A DNA stretch of 64,000 nt, taken from sequence record MK250027.1; one strand, given 5' to 3'. Every line of letters begins with the position of its first letter. Within the stretch, counting starts at the first letter, position 1. Below, piece by piece: positions 314 through 53,886 of this stretch. The notes below the pieces were generated by a model. The model saw only the letters and a list, made by a program, of their open reading frames with translations. It ran no database searches and was not told the origin of the DNA. A program made the translations under genes and the position numbers.

Positions 314-3300
314 TTATCGCTTATAAATTTTAACTGTTGGATATATATTCTTACCAGTTGTTTCATTAATCACAATAGTTAGAGTATTTAAATTTTCTTT
401 TGTTTCTATATTTGTAGAATAATTTTCATACTTATAATATGTGTTTAAATTAGCTGGTTTTTCAGTTACTATATTTATATTTGAATTTGGTTCTGTGTCT
501 TTTGCATAAAGTTCAACTTCAATATTTGACTATGCATTATAATATACTGATAATGTATGATTTATATAATTTTTCTAACCTGTATATTGAGAATCTTTAA
601 AATAATTCCAATTTTCATTAAATGATTCATTATTTATAAAATGATTAAATATTGCGGATGTTAAATTTATAGTTATAACTGTATTACCTTGATTAATATC
701 AGAAATATTATATGAAGAATCTGAATAATTAACAGATAATATGTCATTCGCAGTAGGATAAACAAATTTATTAATTAATATATAATCATTATGAATAACC
801 ATACAGTGTGAACCTAAGAATGATTTATCATCAATTCCTGTTTTATGTCCATCAATACTTATATAATCATTTTCATTAAGATATTTACGATAATAATTAT
901 TATCCCATGTCGCGCTTAATAATGAACGATTATCTACTAAATAATAATTTTTATTTAATCTCTATAAATTAGTGTCTTCAAATACTTTATTACCTGGATA
1001 ATTCTGTATTCTATTAATATTTTTTATTTTTGTATTAGATTGCAATAAATCAACATTAAGAATATCTCGTAATTCATCATCTATATAAAAATCAACCATA
1101 TTATTCGTATTAGGTGTAAACCATCCGTAATTAAATTTAATCTAATTAGGTATTGATAATGTAAATATTAATGGATTATATTCTTCTGTATTATGTATTA
1201 ATTTAACCTCTGCTTTTTCTGGGATAATATATATATCAATATCATTAGTAAATGTATCAACATATCGTTTTAACTTATCCTTCGGTGTTTCTAATGATAT
1301 TAATTTTGATATATACTTCTTAAAATGTGTTAAATTAGTTCCTGTTATCAATTTCGTGTTAGTTAATAAGTTTGTTTTATCATTTTTATATGATATAATA
1401 AACTAATCACTATTAAGAATATTTGATAATTTTATATTGTTAACATTATTTACATTATTTTGTTTCTTTATAGTTAATCCTAATTTATTTTCATTTAATG
1501 TTATTAATTTCGGATTTAATACATTTGTTATATTTAAATGCTAACTTATATTTTTTCCTATAGTTGTAGTACGTCTTATAACATTTTCAAGGATCTATTT
1601 AGCTGTATGATTATATTCACCATCTGCCTTTGTAATAATATACGCATGACTATTACTTGATATTGAATTTACATGAGTTAATGTACCTGGATAATCAATA
1701 TACTCATAATTTGTTAATACACCAATATCATTATAATTATTAACAGAAACATATTCATTACAATCAACTGAATTTTCCATATTAAATGAAACAAACTATG
1801 GTGAATTAGTTGATAATGTTGTATTTACTATCGGTACATCATACTATGTAAATAATGAAGACCATAAATTATGTTCATCTATTAATGACATTAATTGTTT
1901 ATGAAAATTATTCTTCTTATGAGCATGAATACCATTATTCATACAGTTAAGTGTCCTGAAATCAATATCATATGGTGCGTTAAGAACTGCATAATCAGCA
2001 TAACTCTAATATTCATTTGTTGTAACATTCTTTATGTTAGATGTGCCTTCATGTGCATAATCAATATAGAACTAATGATTAATCAATAAGATGAACCTTT
2101 CTTTTAACGATATATAAATCTCATTAGTTTTTGATAAATCATAATCGGTTAAAACAAATGCTTCAAACCCTGAATAATCTTCAAGATGAATATAACTATT
2201 AACAACCTTTGTATTTAACTTAATATTAAATTTAATACCGGAAAATATAAACTCAAGACTTTTAATATTAGAATTATAATATACAGATGCTGTATCAATA
2301 TTAGTATTATCTATCAATAATTTTTTAATGGAATGCTGTACAGAACCATTTAATATACTTTCCTTATATGTAATTGATTCATTATTAATATACAATATAT
2401 TATCTACTTTATTAGTTACATATTGATTTGTATCATAATCTGCTACATTATAAGTATTTTCACAGAAATTACCATTAAATTCATAATTTTCATTTAATGT
2501 ATTAACATCTAATATGTTATTATTATCATAATATTGTCCATTAGATTTCCATAAACATTGTACAGATGGAACAATAGGATATAATAATTCACTATTACCT
2601 GTATTATTAGGATTTACAAAATAATTATTTGATTTTAATTCTGGAATTACAGTATCATAATTATATTCCTAATATTTTTGTTTGTCTGCTATTTTTAATT
2701 TAGTATTTTCTATAACAGATATTGAATTCAAATTATTTACGTTTATAGTTGTACTTATATATGCTGTTTTAGAAGGTGTTATTATAAATGTCGTTCCTTT
2801 AGACACATTTACTTTATTGAATTTAAGTTTACCATCTAAAACTTCATACATCACTCCATGTTGTATTCTATAATCCGTTTCATCTGTTGCAATAGTTTCA
2901 CCTGCCGGAATATCAATATATAAATTATCCTCATTATGTAATGTTCTGCTTAAATCAATAGTTGTATCTATATCTTTAATATTAGTAATACCCATTATAG
3001 CAACTGCGACTTCTGTAGGTTTATACAAATGAATCTTATTAGTTATTAATAACGAAGGATTAATAGTAGAAATCATGCATGTATTTACATCATATGGATT
3101 TGTTATTACGCATAAATCCTATGTTTTATTAATAAACTACTATTGATTATCTAAACTATAATTCTTATAATTATCTGGTTCCCATACATTATTTCTCAAA
3201 TATCCATTTGTAATATTAAATACATTAACTGTATCATAAATACCATTTGTGTTATAAATTAATGGATACTTAATTTTATTAACTAAGTCACTAATATCTG

Positions 3301-6300
3301 TATTAACAGAATATGTATAATTAAGTTCTTTTGTTGATTTAAACTTAACAACATTATTGTAACGCCAACCTAATGTTTCAAAACAATAATTGGAGAATGC
3401 ACAATAATAATTATCAAAATAATCTGATTGATTTGTCAATGCATGCATTTCATAAGTTATATTACTATTAAAATATGAAATAGTATCATCTTTAATATTA
3501 ACAGGATCTTCTGATTCAACATAACAATGTAAATCACTTATATTATTTAAATAATTATGTTCAGAATTATTATCTATATTCTTTATCCAATCATTTTCAT
3601 TATCATCCGGTTGTATATCATTTTCAATATATTTAATACCATTATGTTTAATAAATGAAATACTGTTATTATATTCTTTATTTGTTGTATATAATGATGA
3701 TACAAGACCATTTACTTTATCAAATCCAAAATAATCATAATGAAAATCATCAAACTTTGGTGCTAATATATGTTGAACATACATATTATCATATGATGAA
3801 ATTATAGAAATACTCTTATCATTATAAGATCCAACTTTAATTATATTAGTATTAAATTTCTCAATACATTTTATAATACGATTAATCTGTACATCTAATG
3901 TTGCAGTTATATCATTATATTCCAAATCCTATGAATAAAATGAAATTCTATAGAAATAAGTATTTTCAGAATATCTACATTTCTATTTGGCAACATATGG
4001 ATTTATATTATAATCAGTCTCTAATAATCTATCATCATTTGATGCAATTATTTCATATACAATATGTTCAGTTGTAAACTTATTTGTTTCATATGTATTA
4101 CCAGCATTAGTAACAGAAGATTTAATAGGATAATCCTATGCAATAAATTTAATATGTTCACCACATTCAATAGGTTTATTGAAATGTAATATTATAAAAC
4201 TTTTATCAGTATCTTTATCTATCTTAATTTCTGATGAATCTAATGACATTAAATTTGAGTCTGGAGTATTAGTGACATAATTCTTAAAGAAATTCTTTAA
4301 ATCAATATCAGTCTAAACTCTACCTACATTATTATTTGTTATTGCGAAGAATAATCTATCATAATATTTCTTATCGAATATTACTTTATAAATATTCTCA
4401 TCTCCTTTATAAATATCACCATTTTCATCATATTTAGTTAATACTGTATTTCCTGTACTATTCTTAGAAGAAACAACATAACCATAATTAATGAAATCAT
4501 TTGCAGTTAAATATAATCCAAAATAACGATGCATAGAATATTCTTCCATATCATTATCATCAAACATAAACTCAAGGTTTATAATATTGGAATATATAAG
4601 ATTATGTCTTTCAAAGCCAGCAATAATATAATTATTAAACATTTCTTGTTTATTAGCTATATCTGAATTTAATATTTTAGATCCAAAATATGTTGTCTCT
4701 GACTAATTAACAAGAATGCCTCTATCTACTGATATACCTTTCCATATATTATTGCCTTGTCTATAATAAGGAGAATTCTAATTATAATCCTGTTCAATAA
4801 ATTGCAAATAACATTGTCCATAATTAGACAACATATTCTTATAATTATTAAGATATTGTCCAATAGATGTTGTTGTTCTTAAATCAAATGTCTTTATAAC
4901 CTTTGATTCTTTAATTAATTTCTTTAATTTTTCTGTATCATTAATTCCTTCACCTGAATATGTCTCTTCATTAAATATATCGTCATATCTGAATATCGCG
5001 AAGAATTCTGGTACATTATTTCCTATATGTAATGGCGCGAGAATCTTCATATTTTCAGAATAAAGACTATCTGTATTTGTTTCTGCACCATATTCATACA
5101 TTGTTTCATATTGATCTTTATAATCAGTATAAACCTTATGTGCTTTCAGAGAATTTTCTGGTAATCCAAATAAATTTTTAATAGGAATTTTACTGAATAC
5201 CTTTTTTATATCTCTTGGATAATTACCATCAGATGAAATAGGGTATTTACGAACATTCTTATTATTTAATACAGCATTAGCTTTAAATGTATCAAGATAT
5301 AAGTTATAATCTTTATCTACAACTAATTTAATATTTCCAGATAACTTTGGATTTGCTCTTAATAACATTGATGAATGATGTTGTGTATTAAGTTCATAAC
5401 CTTTATTATCATAATTTGTTAGATGCTTTTCATTTTCATCATTAGTAACTATTAATCGTCCGTTTATTTTATTGCTAGATTTATCAGTAATAGTTAAAAC
5501 AATATCTTCTGATGAGCTAATAGGATAATCATCATCTAAACTTATTGTAAATATACCAGGTTCTATCCTATTTTCAAATATAATATTATTATCTGTTTTA
5601 TTTATGAAATCATTAATATGAACACCATTAATTCTTAAATAATTTTTCAAAGCATTATTCTATAATGTTATAATATAATTTGAAGGAGTTTCTGTTTTTA
5701 CACGAATATTACTTCCATATACAGATATTTTATTTATAACAGACTATGTATTAATATCAGATATTTTTTTATCTTTTAAAACTATCATATCCGGTACTTG
5801 TTCTTTTAATTTATCCTAATCAATTATCAACTAATCTGTAATTTTGTCAACATATGAAATTTCTAAATTTGCTTCAATATCTGTTAAACTTTTATCGGAT
5901 ACTTCTTTTTCTGTATTTGTATAATCATATACATCTGTTAAATAAATATAATTTCCAGATAAAATAGGATATACACCATATCTAGGAATTTGTTTTGTTA
6001 AAGGATTCGCACATTCTTTTGTTTCAATACTATGTCCGTCTTCATCTATGTCTATTTCATAATTATATAATTTTTCATTATTGTTTATATCGTCATTACC
6101 AGTTGCTATTTCATACTTAGGTTTATCTTCATCCGTATTTATTAATACATAACGATGATATATAGCTCTATAAGAACTGTCTATACAACTTATACTCTTT
6201 TCACCTAATGTTATTAATTTTGTGTTATCAGCTATATTACCATTATTAGGATAATCGTTATTATCTTGGACAGGTACACTATAAATTATAGTATCTTTAT

Positions 6301-7645
6301 TATTAATAGTAGTATCATTATACTTATTACATATACGATTACTAAAATTATACATTTCTTTATAATCATTGAAGAATTCGGTTTCATCCTAATCAAAAAA
6401 CACGCTTGAATCAAATCGATTATATATTCTATATGAATTATTATGTGTACAAAAATTCTTGATTATAAAATCATTAATACTAAAGCTATAATTTTCAGCA
6501 TTATTATGATATATTTTTATATTAGTTCTATATGTCTTAAAAGGCTCTTTATCATTATTAAACGTAAATGAGCCGTTAATATTAAAAGTATAAAAATCAT
6601 TCTATGCATCCTTATCAACTTTAGTCGTAATATTTCTATCTTTAATATAAGTATTATATACAGTAGGAGACCAGATAAAAACAGGTTTATAATATATAAA
6701 TTTTAATGGTACTGATTTTTGTTTATATCCTAAATAAGCATTCTAAGAAACAACACATTCTGTATATGCACTAACAGACAATAATGATTTAGGATCTGTA
6801 TATATTGCACTAATTTGAAACCTTAATACATTTCGGTCTTCCTATATAAAATTATCAGGTACATACAATAAATTTGTATGTGGTATTAATGTATTATTAT
6901 CTGTATTATAATCAAATGCTGGTAATAATAATGTATTGTTATTAAGTTTATCATCTTCCCATTTTGGTAAAGTTATATCCTTAATTGCCTCTTGTAATTT
7001 CTGCTCTTCTATATTAATTTTATTATTATTATATAAAATTACGGGTTTAATAATTAATTTAAATGGAAAGTCACCTATATTTTTATCATATAAATTCCAA
7101 TTAGTTAATGAATCATTAATATGTGATTTATTATCGCTCCAATATATTTTAACATTAATCTTATAATTTGCAACATAATGATCATCAATATAACCTCCAT
7201 TAAAATTTGAATTAAATGCACTTGGTAAATCATTACCAATATTTACAAATGTACCTTCATCATATGTAGAATCGTCAGAATGAAATAATAAGTCACTAAA
7301 TATATTATTTGCTATATTTTTATTAACATTAATATTATTTAATGGGAATATATTTCCATAAATTATTTTATTTGAATTTTTCTCTGAATTCTTTCCATAA
7401 AAAGGTAATTTATCAAATTTTGCTGTTAATTCCATTTTAACAGGATATGGTAAATCACTATTTATATTTTCTTTATCTTTAAACTAAAACGAATCAGGGT
7501 CATATACATATCCTAATTTATCTGTATTCATGACAGGAATTGGATATTCTACATCTTCATACCCATTTATTAAAACAGATGAATTAATAACAACATCTCT
7601 CTTATTTGGTGTTAACTTAAATAAATATTTCTTTTCTTTTGCCAT
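314..7645 (-). CDS. Giant (2443 aa) putative virion structural protein; TAG=Gln
   Basis: Track ORFs 575-802, 1142-1351, 1595-1780, 2072-2395, 2669-3076, 3140-3925, 4313-4642, 4778-5650, 5831-6355 and 6842-7435 share one frame. I scanned the gaps and found only TAG, with no TAA/TGA until 314-316. Function inferred from operon context. Confidence 0.8.
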
Positions 7646-26275: not shown

Positions 26276-27130
26276 ATGAATAATTTTGATGATGCAATAA
26301 AAAAGAAATTATTAGAAGATGTTAATAATTTCAATGATATAATTTATAATAGAAAGACTATTAATGAAAGTTCTATTAATAGAATGTTTTATTGGATTAA
26401 TACATGTGATTGCGCATTTATTATTGCATTTAGATATGAATTAACAAATGTAGTAAATCCTGATAAAACATATTACGGACCTAATAATGATTGGAAAGAT
26501 AAAAAGATATTCACTCATGAAGAGAATCGCATGAAGAATAAATTGCTTTATGGTGAATTACTTAAATTAAAATATGGTGTTATCAAGGTAAAAGGTGTAT
26601 ATCCAGAAGGTATGGATAAAGAATCATCTGAAGAAAGTTATTTAGTTGTAAATAGATTTAATGATCTTGAATTTTTAAATAATATTTTAAGATTAGGAGA
26701 ATTTTATAATCAAGACTCTATCTATTATAAGCCGAAGAATAAAACATATGGTTATCTTATAGGCACGAATAATGCATACCCAGGTTATCATAAGAAAGGA
26801 GATGAAAGTACATTAAAATTAGGTACTGCTTCAAATTTTATGTCACGACTTGGAAATAAAGCATTCTCATTTATTCCAAAAAATGCTATTAAATTTAATA
26901 ATAAAGAAGATGCAGTAAATACAGAATCTGAATATCAAAAGTATTGGACAGATTATTCAGGAACGTCATTTAAAGATAGAAAAAAGAACAGAACAATAAA
27001 TCCTAAATTACAAGAAGCTTTAGAATTTTGGAGAACTAATTTAGGTGGTATTGATATTATTGAAAAAATGCATCCAAAAACAAGATTATGTATGTTTAGT
27101 TTTTTAAGAGAAAATTTAAATAATGAATAA
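26276..27130 (+). CDS. Conserved phage hypothetical protein (INESS...AFR...KGVYPE...EESYLVVN...QDSI pattern)
   Basis: ORF; start moved to the second Met to avoid overlap with the upstream gene. Confidence 0.7.
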   Translation: MNNFDDAIKKKLLEDVNNFNDIIYNRKTINESSINRMFYWINTCDCAFIIAFRYELTNVVNPDKTYYGPNNDWKDKKIFTHEENRMKNKLLYGELLKLKYGVIKVKGVYPEGMDKESSEESYLVVNRFNDLEFLNNILRLGEFYNQDSIYYKPKNKTYGYLIGTNNAYPGYHKKGDESTLKLGTASNFMSRLGNKAFSFIPKNAIKFNNKEDAVNTESEYQKYWTDYSGTSFKDRKKNRTINPKLQEALEFWRTNLGGIDIIEKMHPKTRLCMFSFLRENLNNE

Positions 27131-28133
27131 TAAAGATAATTAGATAATTTCAAAATATATAGAAAATAATTCTATTAAAAAGAATTGTCAATATTGGAAT
27201 CATATAGATACAGATGATCAAATTTATATTAAAGATAAATTTAAACATATCAAAGATATAAAATTATCAGAATGTCTCTATATGATTCTTCATCATTTAG
27301 ATAATAGACCAATTTGTCCTATATGTCATAAAGAAATAAAACTAGAAAGATTCTCATTAGGATACAAAACATTTTGCTCTAATACATGTAAATATTCAGA
27401 TAAAGGAAAACAACTTATTCATGAAAAACAAAAGGAGACATGTTTAGAAAAGTATGGAGTTGATAATCCTATGAAAGATATTTCCATCAAAAATAAATCT
27501 ATATCTAAATGTAAAGAAACAAATAAACGAAAATACAATGTTGAATATAATTTTCAACGTGAAGATATAAGAAAACAAATTATTCAAACAGTAAAAAATA
27601 AAACCGGTTATGAATATGCGTTTTTAAATAAAGAAAAAGTATTATATACATTACATAATAAATATGGCTCTGGTATAGATAATGTATTTCAATTAGATAG
27701 TATTAAAGATAAATCGAATAAAACAAAAGAATTAAATAATAGTTTTAATACTTCTAAATATGAAGATTTAACATATGAAATATTAAGAGAACATTATAGT
27801 AATGTAATAAGACAATTTAAATCAGAATTATATCCATTTAATTGTGATTTTTATATTGTAGATAAAGATACATATATAGAAATAAATGCAAGTTGGACAC
27901 ATGGCAAACATCCATTTAATGAGGATGATTTAAATGATGTTAAACTTTATAATGAATGGATGAATAAATCAGACTATTATAAGAATTCTGCTTATAATTG
28001 GAGATTTAGAGATACAAAGAAAAGGAATATTGCAAAAGAAAATAATTTAAGATATTTTGAAATATTCCCTATAAATATAGAAGATTTAAAAAATAAATTG
28101 AAAAAAATTATTCAAAAAATAGACAATTTATAA
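27123..28133 (+). CDS. Putative homing endonuclease (Zn-ribbon + repeats + PD-(D/E)xK/EDxHD-like nuclease); one TAG=Gln
   Basis: ATG 27123 in frame via TAG; CPIC, FCSNTC, ETCLEKYGVDNP, C-terminal CDFYIVDKDTYIEINASWTHG. Confidence 0.75.
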
Positions 28134-28175: not shown

Positions 28176-29300
28176 ATGCCTAAGAAAGTTTAGTTTGAAG
28201 AATTTGAGTAGAGATTAAAAAATAAATTTGGTGATAAGTTTAAATATATTGATTTAAGTTTAATAGATAAAGAAAACTTTAATTATTTAGATAAGTATCC
28301 TATTAAATGTTTAATACATAATAAAATAGCATATAAAGAGCCGAAAATCTTTTTAAGATCTACAACATTAAATATATGTAGTAAATGTCAAAGGGAATAG
28401 CAAGTTCGTGATTCACATAAAATGCATGAAGGTAAAGAAAGACATTATACATCAGTTGATGAATTTCTAGAGCGTTTATATTAGAAATATAAAGATAAAA
28501 TAACTATTGATAAAAATGATATTTTATTAAATAAAAATGGTTCAGTAAATTTTTCATAGAAAATGAAATTTATATGTCAAAAACATGGTGAATTTTATTG
28601 TAAACCATCCGATATATTTCGTTCAACTCATGGATGCTCAAAATGTGCTAATGAATATATGAAATTAAAAAATATTCAATATGGTGAAGAACGAAGATAG
28701 TCATTTATAAATGATGCTATTAAAATTCATGGTAATCAATATGATTATTCAAAGGTTGATATAACAGGTAAACTAAAAAAAGTTGAAATTATATGTAAAG
28801 ATCACGGTTCATTTTTTATGATGCCATCTTTACATTTAAGAGGTGAAGGTTGTAAACTTTGTAATAAAACAAATTTATTAAATTGTGAACGACGTTTATA
28901 TCAAATATTAATTGATAATTTTCCTAATGAAGAAATTATTAAATAGTATCATAACTTTTTAGGAAGACAAAGTTTAGATTTTTATTTTCCTAAATATAAA
29001 ATAGGAATAGAATATCAAGGTAAGCAACATTTTGTTACTAGTGAATATTTACATAATGACACAAGGCATTCATTAAAACATTAGAAAGAACTTGATGAAA
29101 AGAAGTTCAATAAATGTAAAGAACATAATGTTACACTTTTATATTTTACATTTGATAAATAGTATGAAAATATTGAATATTACTCAAAACTATATGTAAA
29201 TATAAAAGACTTAATTGAAAAAATACAATATATAATAAATAATTACAATGTTTGCGTTAATAGTAATACAGACATTGAGCAACAAAAATTAAATACATAA
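28176..29300 (+). CDS. Putative homing endonuclease (repeated C-x2-HG...GC-x2-C modules + Vsr/DUF559-like nuclease), 374 aa; TAG=Gln; absent from the ORF track
   Basis: Manual translation: HGNQYDYSKV...IICKDHGSF...GEGCKLC; LDFYFPKYKIGIEYQGKQHF; several in-frame TAG. Confidence 0.8.
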
Positions 29301-29306
29301 TAAATT

Positions 29307-31855
29307 ATGAGCAACAAAAAAGTAGTTGGAATTGATTTAGGTACTGGAAACAGTGCGGTAGCCATCATCGAGAATGGCGTAGCTAAAGTAATTGAAAATG
29401 CAGATGGTTATAAGACAACTCCATCTGTAGTGTACATCAAGGGTGATGAAACAAAAATTGGTGCAGCCGCAAAACGTGGTATGGTAATGAATCCAAAGAA
29501 TACCATTTCATTTGTAAAGCGTTTTATGGGTGCTAAATGGGATGATCCTGATGTACAGAAGATGTTAAAGATGGTAACATATGATGTTATCGATGAAAAT
29601 GGAAATCCTCGTCTTAAGATTGACGATAAAACATATTCACCAGAGCAAATTTCATCTATGATTCTTAAGAATATGTATGAAGTTGCAAAGGGATTCTATG
29701 GAACAGAAGATTGTAAAGACGCTGTTATTACTGTTCCTGCATGGTTTAATGATATTCAGCGTAATGCTACAAAGGTAGCAGGTCAGTTGGCTGGTTTGAA
29801 TGTTCTTCGTATTATTAATGAGCCAACTGCAGCAGTTCTTTCTTCAAATATTGATACAAAATCTGGAGATAAGATTGTTCTTGTTAATGATCTCGGTTGT
29901 AAATATTCTGTTACTGCATCCGCGCTTGCTGCTTAATCACTAAAGCAAGTGTAAAGTTAAAAACCCGTTAATTGCTGAGAGTCCCACGTTAGTTATATAC
30001 TAATGATAAAAATGGTCTTAAATACCGCTATTAGATGGTGACATACTAATTAGCACCAACTTTAATGTGTTGGGTATGGTAAAAAGTTTAAGAATTGGGT
30101 GACCGCCGTAAATCTTAAAATATATTAAGATAGAGCAGCCAAGTATCTTGGTAACAAGATAAAGGTTCAACGACTAGAAAAAGTAATCCTATTAATTTAT
30201 GAAGAAATTTCCACGAATGCGGGTTAGTTTAGAAGTGGTACAAGTGATATAAGATAAATATTTAAAGTATTTATTTATCTTATGATTAATACATAGTTCT
30301 TTGATTTATTGATTAAACACATATTTAAATTATATGATGAAAATAATAATTTGGAATTTAAGTTTGTGTTTGATTATGAATTAAATGAATTTAATCAATA
30401 ACTTCTAAATGAAAGAGATAGTCTTGAGGAATGAAAGTTCCTCGGTAAGATAAAGAGCTTACAAAGTTAAATAGAAACAAATAGGGTACAGAGGATGTTT
30501 CTATTGTTGAGATTTCTGATGGTATGATTGAGGTTCTTGCATCTGATGGTGATGTGTTCCTTGGCGGTCAGAATTATGATAATGCCATTGTTCAGTGGCT
30601 TATCGATGAGTTTAAGAAAGATACAGGTATTGATTTGAGTAAGGATAAGATGGCATATGCACGTCTTGTAGAGGCAGCAGAGAAAGCAAAGTGTGAGTTG
30701 TCAACTACTACTCAGACAGAGATTAACCTTCCTTATATTACTGTATCTGATGGTGTTCCTCAGATGTTGATTAAGACTCTTAATCGCGCTACATTTGAGA
30801 GACTTACAGAAGATCTTACAAATAAGGTTGTAGAGATTGCACATCGTGCTGTAGAGAAGGCAGGTATTACAGAGGATCAGATTAGTGAGATTCTTCTTGT
30901 TGGTGGTTCTTCACGTATTCCTTCAGTTCAGGATGCATTGGAGAAGTCATTTAACAAACCTTTGAATAAGACCTGTAATTTTGATGAGGCTGTTGCACTT
31001 GGTGCTGCTATTCAGGCAAATACACTTGCAGGTAATGCAACAGAGGATTCAGTACTTCTTTTGGATGTTACACCAATTTCACTTGGTATTGAGGTAAATG
31101 GTTGTGAGATGGCTAAGTTGATTGAAGCTAATACAACTATTCCTACACGTAAGTCACAGACATTTACAACTGCAGTAGATAATCAACCAGCTGTAACTAT
31201 TAAGGTACTTCAGGGTGAACGTCCAATGTCCGCTGATAATAAGGTAATTGGTACATTTAATTTGGAGGGTATTGCACCAGCTCCTAAGGGTGTTCCTCAG
31301 ATTGAAGTAACATTTGATATTAATGCGGATGGTATTCTTGAAGTAACTGCAAAGGATAAGGGTACAAATAAGGAACAGAAGGTAACAATTCAGTCTCCTA
31401 ACGCACTTTCTGATGAAGAGATTGCACGTATTAAGGCAGATGCTGAGAAGTTTGCAGAAGCAGATAAGAAGAAGAAAGAGGAAGTTGATAAGTTGAATAC
31501 TGCAGAACAATATGCAACACAGGTTCAGAAGTATATTGATGATGAGAAAACAGGTGCATCTGTTCCATCTGATAAGAAAGAAACATTGAAGACAAAGATT
31601 ACTGCAGTTCTTGATGCAGTTTCTAAGAAGGATGTATCAGCAGCAGAGACTGCACGTGCAGATCTTGAAACTGTATTTAAACCTATTGTTGAGGAAATGT
31701 ATAAGAATGCAGGTGGTGCAACAGCAGGTCAACCTCAGAATGAATCACAGGGAAATCCATTTGCTAATGCAGGATTTGGTGATGCAAATGCTTCAACTTC
31801 TGATACTAAGGCAGATGATGACGTTCAAGAGGCAGATTTTGAGGAAGTAAAGTAA
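29307..31855 (+). CDS. dnaK: DnaK/Hsp70, two exons (29307-29900 and 30485-31855) split by a group I intron
   Basis: GIDLGTGNS, TVPAWFND, INEPTAA; splicing gives VNDLGC|GTEDVSIVEISDG (canonical DLGGGTFDVS); LVGGSSRIP, LLDVTP, EAD..E tail. Confidence 0.95.
29901..30484 (+). mobile_element. Group I self-splicing intron (584 nt) without a full-length ORF
   Basis: Exon ends in U and intron ends in G; core elements AATTGCTG, GCAGCCAAG, GGTTCAACGACTAG and AGAGATAGTC (P7 GACTA/TAGTC); removal restores the frame and the conserved motif. Confidence 0.9.
30282..30401 (+). pseudogene. 39-codon intron-internal ORF, probable homing-endonuclease remnant
   Basis: MINTQFFDLLIKHIFKLYDENNNLEFKFVFDYELNEFNQ with one TAG; ATG sits in a 12-bp hairpin in the peripheral loop. 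Confidence 0.4.
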
Positions 31856-32039: not shown

Positions 32040-33128
32040 ATGGCAAAAGACTTGTATGATATATTAGGTATTGAGAAAGGTTGTAATGATCAGAAAAAGA
32101 TTAAAACTGCATTTAGACAACTTTCTAAGAAATACCATCCAGATATGCAGAGAGGAAAATCAGATGCAGAGGTAAAGGAAGCTGAGGAAAAGTTTAAGGA
32201 TGTTAACCATGCATATGAAGTTTTGAGTGATCCTCAAAAGAAAGAGAATTATGATAATTTTGGTGATGAAAATGGAAGACCAAATCCATTTGGAGGCTCC
32301 GGTGGTTTTAATCCATTTGGTGGTGATTTTGATCCATTTGGAGGATTTAATCCATTTGGAGGATTTGGTGGAAGTTCACGTCAGAAGAAAAATCAGGTTC
32401 AACCAGGTAGAGATATTCAGATGAAGATTCCTGTATCTATTGAAGATATATTTAAGGGAGTTAAGAAGAGTGTTAAATTTAAGAGAAACGTAAGGTGCTC
32501 TGTATGTCATGGTGCAGGTGGAACTGGTCAGAAGACATGTCCAAAGTGTCATGGAACTGGTAGAATTATTCATCAGCAGCAATTTGCAATGGGGTCATTC
32601 TCTATTCATGAAGAAGTTTGTCCATTGTGTCATGGAACTGGTTTTTATGTAGAGAACAAATGTGATAAGTGTGGTGGTTCTGGATTTGATAAGAAAGAAG
32701 TAAAACTTGATATTGAATTACCATCTGGTGTACAGAATGGAGAATATCGTGTATATAGTGGTGAAGGATCCGAATCAAAGAATGTTTCAGGACCTAATGG
32801 TAATTTTATCGCTATTGCAGATTATACGTTTGATACAGATAGGTATCAGGTTGATGGGTTGAATGTAGTTGAACATATTCATGTCCCTTATTATAAATTG
32901 TTGCTTGGCTGTTCATATACTCTTAATATTCCTTCTGGTGTAAGTAAGGTTGTTAAGTTGAAGAGTTGTATTAAGGAAGGAACAATTATGAGATTAACTG
33001 GTGAAGGACTTAAGAGACCTGATGGTCAAAAGGGTGATTACTTCATTTGTGTTCATTATCAATTTCCAGAAGACCTTAGTGCGAATGATAGAGCATTGCT
33101 TGAAGTTATAGAGAAAAACAATAAATAA
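32040..33128 (+). CDS. dnaJ: DnaJ/Hsp40 co-chaperone
   Basis: J-domain HPD, G/F region, four CxxCxGxG repeats. Confidence 0.95.
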   Translation: MAKDLYDILGIEKGCNDQKKIKTAFRQLSKKYHPDMQRGKSDAEVKEAEEKFKDVNHAYEVLSDPQKKENYDNFGDENGRPNPFGGSGGFNPFGGDFDPFGGFNPFGGFGGSSRQKKNQVQPGRDIQMKIPVSIEDIFKGVKKSVKFKRNVRCSVCHGAGGTGQKTCPKCHGTGRIIHQQQFAMGSFSIHEEVCPLCHGTGFYVENKCDKCGGSGFDKKEVKLDIELPSGVQNGEYRVYSGEGSESKNVSGPNGNFIAIADYTFDTDRYQVDGLNVVEHIHVPYYKLLLGCSYTLNIPSGVSKVVKLKSCIKEGTIMRLTGEGLKRPDGQKGDYFICVHYQFPEDLSANDRALLEVIEKNNK

Positions 33129-43016: not shown

Positions 43017-43088
43017 TGGGGATTAGTATAGTGGTCAGTACAGAGGTCTCTAAAACCTTTAGGCCGAGTTCGAGTCTCGGATCCCCAA
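43017..43088 (+). tRNA. Amber suppressor tRNA (anticodon CUA), Gln-type
   Basis: Acceptor TGGGGAT/ATCCCCA (U1-A72), D stem GTAT/GTAC, anticodon arm GAGGT-CTCTAAA-ACCTT, T arm CCGAG-TTCGAGT-CTCGG. Confidence 0.92.
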
Positions 43089-43130
43089 CAATTAAATGAC
43101 ATAAGTAATATTTTAAAGATTTGATGAATT

Positions 43131-44944: not shown

Positions 44945-45351
44945 GGGGATGAATTTGGATTTGCTTATTAATTATGTGGTAATAAATCGTGTAGGAAAGT
45001 TAATAGCCTTTTGTAGTAATACAAAGAAACTTAGCAAATAAATTTAAATGACGACGAAATAGAATTTCGTATGGCAGCTTAATCCTGATAGGATTGGTAA
45101 TATACACCCATTGAAGCATTTGCTCCTTATACGGTAAGTTTGAGCATTGCCACGGAGTTCGTAAGAGTGATAATCTCTGTTAAATAAAACTCTTACATAT
45201 ACTTATTCATTGTCCAATAAGAGTGATTATGACATTAAACTGTTTAACTCTAATAACACAGATATAAATGAAAACTAATAAAGACATACGCACGTAGATA
45301 GTTTATTATTGACATGTTAGTAATACGTGGTTTCGAGTACCACCATCTCCA
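44945..45351 (+). ncRNA. ssrA: tmRNA; tag reading frame ...DDEIEFRMAA* (about 45050-45082)
   Basis: 5' GGGGATG pairs with 3' CATCTCC-A including the G3-U70 Ala determinant; T arm GTGGT-TTCGAGT-ACCAC; internal tag ending AA-stop; exact resume codon uncertain. Confidence 0.88.
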
Positions 45352-45490
45352 CATTTTTAGATTATATTTCATAATATAGAATTTTTAATTGTTTAATTTT
45401 GTAAATGAGTTGTATGTTTAGATAAACATATGACTCATTTTTTTGTATAATAATAAATAAGATAATAAAACTAAATATAAGCATAAATAT

Positions 45491-47377
45491 ATGCCAACTA
45501 AATTTATAGCAAGAAAGTTTAATCCAGGGAAAGCAGATCATAATAAAATAAATACACTTATTAATCTGTCTTCACTTAGTTTAAATTCAGCATAGAGTAT
45601 TCTTAAAACTTCATTGGCTTTAGGATCTACTCAAACAAGTAATTATTCTGGTGATTCATTAACACCGTTTAATGATATTTTAAATCAAGATTAGAATAAG
45701 TTTACATAGTATGCAGATATTACTAAAAATACAAGTTAGTCTTATGCATACTATGATTTGTCATATCAATAGAGAAGAGAATAGTTAAGGTAGTTTGCTT
45801 CACAACAAACTATTTCATTTGTTTTAGATACTATTGCAGATGAATCTATTATATTGGATGAAAATAATTATTTTGCATAGTTAGATTTAAATCTTCTTAA
45901 ATTAAAACTTAATACTAATTATAAAGGTGCAAATGGAGAAACTGCTGATGATTTAATAAAGAATTGTCAGAAAGCATTTAAGATTATATATTCAACATAT
46001 GGATGGGATAAATCTAATGATGCATGGAATTATTTTAAGAAATTTCTTATAGAAGGTTATCTTGCATTTGAGATTGTTGTTGATAATCTTATGAAACCTA
46101 CAAGAATCATAGGTATGAGGGAATTGGATCCTGCTACATTGGAACCTGATATTGAAATTGATCCAATGACAAATAAAGAAGTAAAGGTTTGGTATCAATA
46201 TAAAGGTGACGCATAGTTAGAAAGGAAAATTCCAGATTCTAATATTGTATATATATCATGGTCAACAGGTATGTATGGAGAGTAGTCACGTGTATCATAT
46301 CTAGAAGGTTTAATAAGATCATATACAATGTTAACATAGTTGGAGACTTCTCGTATGGTATGGAATATCATGAATGCATAGAAAAGAGTTAAAGTAGGTA
46401 TTCCTGTAGGTAATATTTCTTAGGATAAAGCTCGTGCACGCGTAAATGAAGTTAAAGCAGATTGGAATGAAGAAACAACAGTTGATGAAATATCAGGTGA
46501 GATGGTAGTAAATGGACAACCACGATTCTCATTTTCAAAGACACATTTCTTCCCTGTACGTGATGGTAATTCAATGACTATAGAAGAAATCCCAACAGAA
46601 GGATATGATTTAAGTGATATTACTCCATTGAAATATTTCTGGAGGCGTTTTATATTAGAAACTAAAATACCAGCTAATAGATTTATGATTGATCCTGCAG
46701 CAGAAGGAGCGCATCCATTGGGTGGTGATGATGCAAGTATAACACGAGAGGAATATGCGTTTGGACGTTTTATTAGTCGTGTTAGAAATATATATCGTGA
46801 AATTTTGTTAAAACCATTATGGGTACAAATATGTTTAATGATGCCAGAGTTAGCAAGTTCTGAATTATTGAAACAATGTATAGGTATTGTTTTTAATGAA
46901 GAAAATATGTTTGTTAAAGCAAAAGAAAGAACTGCGTTAAAACAAGGCGCGGAAATTATAGGTACATTAGCATAGATTCAATTAGGTGAGAATAAACCAT
47001 TCTTTAGTATGAAATTCTTAATTGAGAAATTCTTAGGTATGTCTGATGAAGATTTTGCACTTAATGAGAAATATAAACAAGGTGAAATTATAGAGCGCTT
47101 AGAACAAGCTAAAACTATTAAACAACATCAAGAAATGGGTAAACAAGTTGGTGAACAACAAGGTAATGGAACTCCTGGTGAAATGGATTTCGGCGGAGGT
47201 TCTGATGCAGGTGGCGGAAGTTCATTTGACGATTCATTTGGAGGCGGTTCTGATGCAGGCGGTGATTTTTCTGGAGGTGATGAAGTATTCTCTGGTGGTG
47301 ACACTGGTATGGGATCCGGTGGTTCTGAAATTGCAGATACTGGTGGCGGTGATGAAGGTGGAGGTGACTTCGCTTAA
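45491..47377 (+). CDS. Portal vertex protein (T4 gp20-like), 628 aa; many TAG=Gln
   Basis: LDTIADESI, GIPVGNIS.DKA, FFPVRDG..TIEEIP, LKYFWRR...IPANRF, ITREEYAFGRFISRVR; Gly/Asp-rich tail. Confidence 0.88.
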
Positions 47378-53771: not shown

Positions 53772-53886
53772 GCTAGTATAGTTTAGTGGCAAAACACCCA
53801 AATCCCAGGGATAAGAGATGGTTTGAGTTGTAGTGTACAATACAATATACAGAAGATTTTGGTGAGTTCGATTCTCACTGCTAGCT
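53772..53886 (+). ncRNA. tRNA-like RNA (Gly-like ends) with an extra ~44 nt in the central region
   Basis: GCTAGTA/TGCTAGC-U, D arm GTTT/AAAC, T arm GTGAG-TTCGATT-CTCAC; no canonical anticodon arm. Confidence 0.6.

Follow-up and report, generated by a model that had tools for sequence, protein, structure and literature searches.

A conserved Ala-Ala-stop ending in the read-through codons of a dnaK group I intron of Prevotella megaphage Lak-B, a putative intron-encoded degradation tag

The dnaK gene of Prevotella megaphage Lak-B was found to be split by a group I intron from which any protein translated from unspliced RNA ends in Ala-Ala followed by a stop codon, an ending that is retained at codon level in dozens of related introns at the same DnaK site in huge gut and rumen phages. 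This suggests that the Ala-Ala-stop is selected at the peptide level, with a putative ssrA-like degron, inferred from sequence alone, as the best available explanation. The stretch of DNA analysed (64,000 nt of MK250027.1, hereafter the window) has a GC content of approximately 25%, many in-frame TAG codons, a suppressor tRNA-CUA, eight further tRNAs and a tmRNA, with the intron region being 100% identical to that of Lak-B4, B7 and B8.

The ORF at positions 29307 to 29936 (+) was confirmed to end in VNDLG-C-KYSVTASALAA, with TGT at 29898-29900 and TAA at 29934-29936, and the DnaK frame resumes at GGT 30485. The observation of the earlier note, that reading on from exon 1 into the intron appends a tail ending ALAA before a stop, therefore holds. 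One correction was required, as intron-less alleles identified in IMG/VR (L005 and L006) read DLG C GTEDVS (GGT TGT GGT ACA), showing that the Cys codon at 29898-29900 belongs to the exon. Exon 1 thus covers 29307 to 29900 (+) and encodes 198 residues, the first part of the nucleotide-binding domain (NCBIfam DnaK NF001413, profile positions 2-192, E 1e-67), while exon 2 covers 30485 to 31855 (+) and encodes 456 residues (profile positions 194-622, E 9e-156). The intron-less allele L005 scores 753.5 bits against this profile, above the curated cut-off of 648 bits.

The intron spans 29901 to 30484 (+), being 584 nt in length, following U29900 and ending with G30484. No intron was found in the window with Rfam at the gathering threshold, with only a weak partial hit to RF00028 being obtained over J8/7-P7-P9 (17 bits, E 0.12, against a gathering score of 50 bits). 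However, a homologous intron without an endonuclease ORF (L143) scores 59.4 bits over the full model (positions 1-253). The read-through codons K-Y-S-V-T-A-S-A-L-A-A occupy 29901 to 29933 (+). Of these, the codons Ala-Ser (GCAUCC, 29916 to 29921) form the internal guide sequence, which pairs with the exon end GGUUGU in P1 (U29900 with G29916) and covaries with the exon across homologues (UGU with GCA, GGU with GCC and GCU with GGC). The codons Ala-Leu-Ala form the 5' strand of P2, and the last Ala codon and the TAA open its loop. The stem described in the earlier note is real and corresponds to this P2 hairpin (29922 to 29952), which was predicted with RNAfold at -11.9 kcal/mol, with a 5' strand at 29922-29930, loop L2 at 29931-29943 and a 3' strand at 29944-29952, the helix sequence covarying strongly among homologues. 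The two terminal Ala codons, GCT GCT, lie at 29928 to 29933, and two back-up in-frame TAA codons follow the first within 27 nt (29952-29954 and 29958-29960). Further intron features are a conserved core segment, GGUUCAACGACUAG, at 30164 to 30177 (P6/P7 5' side), which was used to find relatives, and the J8/7-P7 3' strand, AAGAGAUAGUCU, at 30413 to 30424, located by the partial RF00028 alignment.

Contigs of pig-gut metatranscriptome libraries from two studies (X15 and X16) were found to carry a joint from 29900 to 30485 that skips exactly 584 nt, one of these being a contig of 1808 nt with long flanks. Other contigs of the same or similar libraries contain the intron, representing RNA or DNA, and depth over the intron is lower than over the exons. 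This fits splicing together with a pool of unspliced or excised RNA, but intron-less strains could give rise to the same joint, and it is considered as supportive only.

A single tail of this kind carries little weight. Among the 7274 stop-terminated segments in the six frames of the window, only 4 end in AA and 2 in LAA, making one case rare at a given site (about 3-5e-4) but unremarkable somewhere in 64 kb. Conservation was therefore examined among homologous introns, with the question, set beforehand in the earlier note, being whether these keep the ALAA-stop at protein level despite nucleotide change. Initial results suggested that they do not. Introns of the same family found through the core motif occupy the same Hsp70 site in other phages and in giant-virus MAGs, as well as capsid-like, polymerase and ribonucleotide reductase genes, and their read-through peptides are KN, KL, K, nothing at all, or end in ECY or LVF, with sister introns at the same DnaK site stopping after 0-2 codons. 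This is the ordinary early stop that keeps ribosomes out of the intron core (PMC3073962). Other searches added little. A blastn hit in Lak-A1 was AT-rich low-complexity sequence rather than an intron, a pattern scan of metagenomes returned only two near-identical Lak copies, a pattern anchored on the guide sequence returned only three loci already identified, and two further loci (L025 and L026) were chance pattern matches. Within the Lak-B and Lak-C lineage, where the tail is KHSVTASALAA in Lak-B1-type and Lak-C1, there is too little variation to be informative.

The reading of an unconserved peptide was rejected upon examination of the closest relatives. The tail is KKYTASALAA in locus L038 (final codons GCA GCA UAA), KSVCASRVAA in L049 (with a completely covaried P2), RELCLRAA in L034 and KRHENCLRAAA in L141, with L028, ending in FMAKN, being the only one of these not ending in Ala. 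As gene callers report exon 1 plus tail as a separate protein, a collection of 5.8 billion proteins was searched with the 209-residue ORF and with an exon-only query from the exceptional L028 lineage, the latter being unbiased with respect to the tail. Together these gave 184 read-through ORFs with 101 distinct tails of 7-16 residues, on exons down to about 50% identity. Of the 184, 165 end in Ala and 134 in Ala-Ala, while among the 101 distinct tails 87 end in A, 69 in AA and 44 in [LVIMFA]AA, the nonpolar-Ala-Ala end of ssrA-type signals that is also found in the window tail. The exon-only query contributed 76 new ORFs, 66 ending in A and 48 in AA. On the exon tree, the number of Fitch changes at residues -1 to -8 is 15, 18, 37, 32, 37, 40, 49 and 65, compared to a median of 15 for exon-1 columns, with conservation thus rising toward the C-terminus. 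The full ALAA is not conserved, as position -3 is L, V, R, S, M, F, I or A. In addition, 14 of the 101 distinct tails (about 14%) do not end in Ala (AKN, SIK, SAY, RAE, LAF and others), 22 have Arg at -3, which is not a documented ClpX motif, one clade ends in a single Ala after Arg (CLRA), and three protein clusters stop directly at the exon end, as in locus L155. These exceptions, together with the sister introns that do without any tail, count against a universal requirement.

To distinguish peptide from RNA conservation, DNA was retrieved for 12 more lineages, giving 19 sequences, of which 17 have tails ending in Ala. In these 17, the third positions of the last two codons sample all four bases, while GC is nearly invariant. 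Fitch changes at the three positions are 1, 2 and 7 for the first Ala codon and 0, 0 and 6 for the second, that is, 13 changes at two third positions against 3 at four first and second positions (binomial P = 1.2e-4). The freely evolving codons just upstream change 5-8 times at every position, and the third positions of the two Ala codons change as many times. The 12 extra loci were chosen with their tails known, meaning that exceptions are under-represented in this test, and intron mobility blurs the tree, although this would affect all positions alike. The stop is kept in 17 of 17, having changed once from UAA to UGA (L151). Length changes also preserve the frame. The guide sequence is read in two codon phases (A-S versus C-L, C-I or W-L), with a P1 loop of 9, 12 or 15 nt in one and 10 or 16 nt in the other, and a distance from guide to stop of 12 or 15 nt versus 8, 11 or 14 nt, so that both phases converge on Ala-Ala-stop. 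In most sequences the other two frames also meet a stop before or at P4, hence a need for some stop does not by itself explain the frame maintenance. Intron cores are 48-95% identical, with a median of only 69%, indicating that the tails are not merely recent copies. Selection on the terminal Ala-Ala-stop as codons is therefore considered very probable, though a period-three RNA motif cannot be formally excluded.

The intron lies inside the codons of the DLG(G/C)GT phosphate-binding motif. In bacteria, ribosomes follow the polymerase and so run across the 5' splice site of RNA that is not yet spliced. Here they would read 11 intron codons, covering the P1 loop, the guide sequence and the 5' strand of P2, and terminate at the UAA in the P2 loop before the catalytic core, this being the known ribosome-exclusion stop. 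That part is read from the sequence or rests on established knowledge, and what the present comparison adds is that in this subfamily the last two codons before the stop are held as Ala-Ala, seemingly by selection acting on the codons. The remainder is inference, namely that the released 209-residue fragment, carrying a nonpolar-Ala-Ala-COOH end, would be recognised and degraded by host ClpXP, or by another protease acting on ssrA-type ends, and that this half-ATPase would be useless or harmful to the cell; the presence of ClpXP in the host is likewise presumed. The interpretation of the earlier note, a built-in degron destroying a potentially dominant-negative fragment with a stop position that could couple translation to intron folding, is partly supported, in that the terminal Ala-Ala-stop is conserved within a large subfamily but not in more distant members, while the stop-codon element was already established (PMC3073962). 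ClpX recognises the C-terminal LAA of ssrA tags and similar ends such as the VAA of cleaved RseA (PMC8138137), and, according to the earlier note, tmRNA tags of Bacteroidota also end in ALAA. The tmRNA of the phage itself, at 44945 to 45354 (+) (RF00023, 47.3 bits against a gathering score of 47), has a tag frame ending in DDEIEFRMAA-TAA (GCA GCT TAA at 45074-45082), and proteolysis directed at Ala-Ala ends is therefore evidently relevant in infected cells. The degron mechanism is plausible and the most economical reading, and is held to be about as likely as not.

The main rival, though regarded as unlikely, is a constraint on the RNA alone, in which the apical G-C and C-G pairs of P2 and a loop motif GCNUAA are needed for folding or a tertiary contact, the UAA must be in frame to stop ribosomes, and Ala-Ala is a by-product. 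In line with this, in most of the 19 folded sequences the penultimate Ala codon is the top of the P2 5' strand and the last Ala codon plus stop open L2, GC-rich stems in an AT-rich genome naturally read as Ala in one frame, and an in-frame stop just after the 5' splice site is a known selected feature (PMC3073962). However, the pattern has a period of three, with GC frozen and the third base free twice in a row, and the lower P2 pairs covary freely while these two do not. Moreover, both codons lie wholly in the loop in L038 and L150 and wholly in the stem in L141 and L156, being split in most others, L028 and L155 lack the motif yet keep a P2 hairpin, and the change to UGA keeps the stop rather than the sequence.

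Selection on the peptide for a purpose other than proteolysis is a more doubtful possibility. Ala-Ala before UAA could favour fast, clean termination and ribosome release so that P1 and P2 can fold, or the tailed fragment could have a function of its own. The codon-level signature would fit this equally, and since a terminating ribosome sits on the guide sequence and P2, release kinetics should matter for splicing. However, Ala-Ala is not known to improve termination, the tolerated substitutions (V, I or S at -1 or -2) resemble the weaker ssrA variants used in synthetic biology, and a 198-residue half of the nucleotide-binding domain is unlikely to fold. Chance with shared ancestry, whereby a mobile intron recently spread a neutral relic among dnaK genes, is already disfavoured and appears improbable. 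Although the family carries homing endonuclease ORFs, the divergence of the intron cores, the contrast between the GC positions (0-2 changes) and the codons just upstream, and the compensating indels that restore the frame argue against it.

Among known systems, group I introns of bacteria and phages (T4 td, nrdB and nrdD types) carry an in-frame stop just downstream of the 5' splice site that keeps ribosomes out of the ribozyme core, with translation up to the splice site interacting with folding (PMC3073962), a rule followed by the sister introns at this DnaK site. Here the stop instead lies 7-16 codons in, inside the P2 loop, and is preceded by two codons conserved as Ala-Ala. As in ssrA tags (YALAA) and RseA 1-108 (GVAA) (PMC8138137), the tail is a short unstructured extension of about 10 residues ending in nonpolar-Ala-Ala-COOH and marks an incomplete translation product, but it is read directly from the intron codons rather than added co-translationally by tmRNA-SmpB, making it ssrA-like and not an ssrA tag, and its upstream part shows no conserved adaptor-binding motif. 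The alanine tails of RqcH/RqcP in Bacillus subtilis flag aborted nascent chains for ClpXP, yet these are added without a template on split 50S subunits, whereas two templated Ala codons precede a normal stop here. In eukaryotes, translation straying into non-coding sequence through read-through or intron retention yields C-terminal tails that destabilise the product, a similar concept but a generic property of non-coding sequence acting through proteasomal pathways, in contrast to a specific, conserved dipeptide in a self-splicing phage intron. Full-text literature searches found no description of an intron-encoded degron, no function ascribed to such read-through peptides, and no mention of the Lak dnaK intron or the Lak tmRNA, with the Lak genome paper mentioning only tRNA introns and neither tmRNA nor chaperones. 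The early in-frame stop and the Ala-Ala-COOH degron are each known, while their conserved combination inside the P1-P2 region of a ribozyme is new.

Self-splicing introns in bacterial and phage protein genes face coupled transcription and translation, so that each unspliced transcript can yield a truncated protein, and the accepted view is that introns only place a stop codon to protect their own fold. If the degron reading is correct, which is about an even prospect, this would be the first quality-control signal encoded by a self-splicing intron, in a phage that also carries its own tmRNA with an Ala-Ala tag, and proteins made from unspliced pre-mRNA would be destroyed by the host machinery for tmRNA-tagged proteins. 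A conserved degron would show that an intron also pays for the damage it causes to its host gene, a new form of intron-host mutualism and a natural example of a genetically encoded ssrA mimic. It also suggests that read-through peptides of other introns, and the fragment ORFs discarded in metagenome annotation, deserve a systematic look.

The intron of the window additionally contains, at 30282 to 30402 (+), the remnant of a homing endonuclease-like ORF, as identified by comparison with relatives (L012, L147 and L153-L155) that carry an ORF of 350-377 residues at this position. Downstream of exon 2, a gene for the co-chaperone DnaJ is situated at 32040 to 33128 (+) (TIGR02349, E 5e-84, below the curated cut-off).

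A tmRNA encoded by the phage was identified at 44945-45354 (+) of the window, with a score of 47.3 bits against the RF00023 gathering score of 47, although it was not called by ARAGORN. Its tag frame was found to read ..NDDEIEFRMAA-TAA, and the same gene is present in the nearest virus record (L157). The word tmRNA does not occur in the main text of the Lak genome paper. A suppressor tRNA with anticodon CUA was identified at 43017-43089 (+). Across the whole window, the reading of TAG as Gln opens very long ORFs, such as that at 314-7645 (-) of 2443 aa with 30 TAG codons, and the portal gene at 45491-47377 with 14. By contrast, dnaK, dnaJ and several neighbouring genes contain no TAG at all, and so are readable under both codes. 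Furthermore, a 115-nt match to the tRNA model (36 bits) was found at 53772-53886 (+) that was not called by ARAGORN, this probably being the intron-containing tRNA reported for baboon Lak phages.

Two free-standing homing endonuclease/HNH-like ORFs were found directly upstream of the intron-bearing dnaK, at 27123-28133 and 28176-29300 (+), with matches to phrog_3339 and phrog_559 (E 2e-35), respectively. The second of these requires TAG to be read as Gln at 9 codons. Within the intron of the window itself, only a short remnant of an intron ORF is retained (30282-30402), starting MINT-TAG-FFDLLIKH, while Lak-B1-type and other relatives carry a long insert or an ORF of 350-377 aa at this place (loci compared: L012, L147, L153, L154 and L155). 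Metatranscriptome contigs showed a further variant, in which 168 nt are replaced by 27 nt at 30234-30403. The phosphate-2 motif of this DnaK, which is encoded on both sides of the intron (29889-29900 and 30485-30496), reads DLGCGTED instead of the canonical DLGGGTFD. Cys at this position is common in the Lak-like clade, in intron-less alleles as well.

Related group I introns were found to occupy the same Hsp70 codon position (D-C-G-G|) in giant-virus MAGs, namely the IMG/VR GVMAG contigs L024, L031, L032, L039 and L040. Their read-through tails are conserved but different, being ..CGV(S/N)PL(I/V)ECY and KLLPPVGVNPTLVF. The insertion site is thus shared between phages and eukaryotic giant viruses. 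An intron of the same family is also carried by the ribonucleotide reductase alpha gene of a 636-kb phage (L011 / L020; LR756504.1 and IMG/VR 3300012582_000004), where it lies after GGG and gives the tail KL-stop. Immediately before the GGG codons, the upstream reading frame ends in an intein-like ...VYDLEIKNNHTYQVDGLGLVHN motif.

In related phage contigs, dnaK was found to be preceded by an FtsH-like protease gene (Peptidase_M41) in L149 (1-699), and to lie beside an IS605 OrfB/TnpB-like (Cas12f-like) gene in L150 (1-841). Additionally, a contig filed in a genome collection as 'uncultured Firmicutes bacterium RUG343' (L141; ONIZ01000001.1, 410,106 bp) was found to be the same 410-kb sequence as an IMG/VR viral contig. 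It carries the intron-bearing phage dnaK, and is therefore probably a huge phage that was binned as a bacterium.
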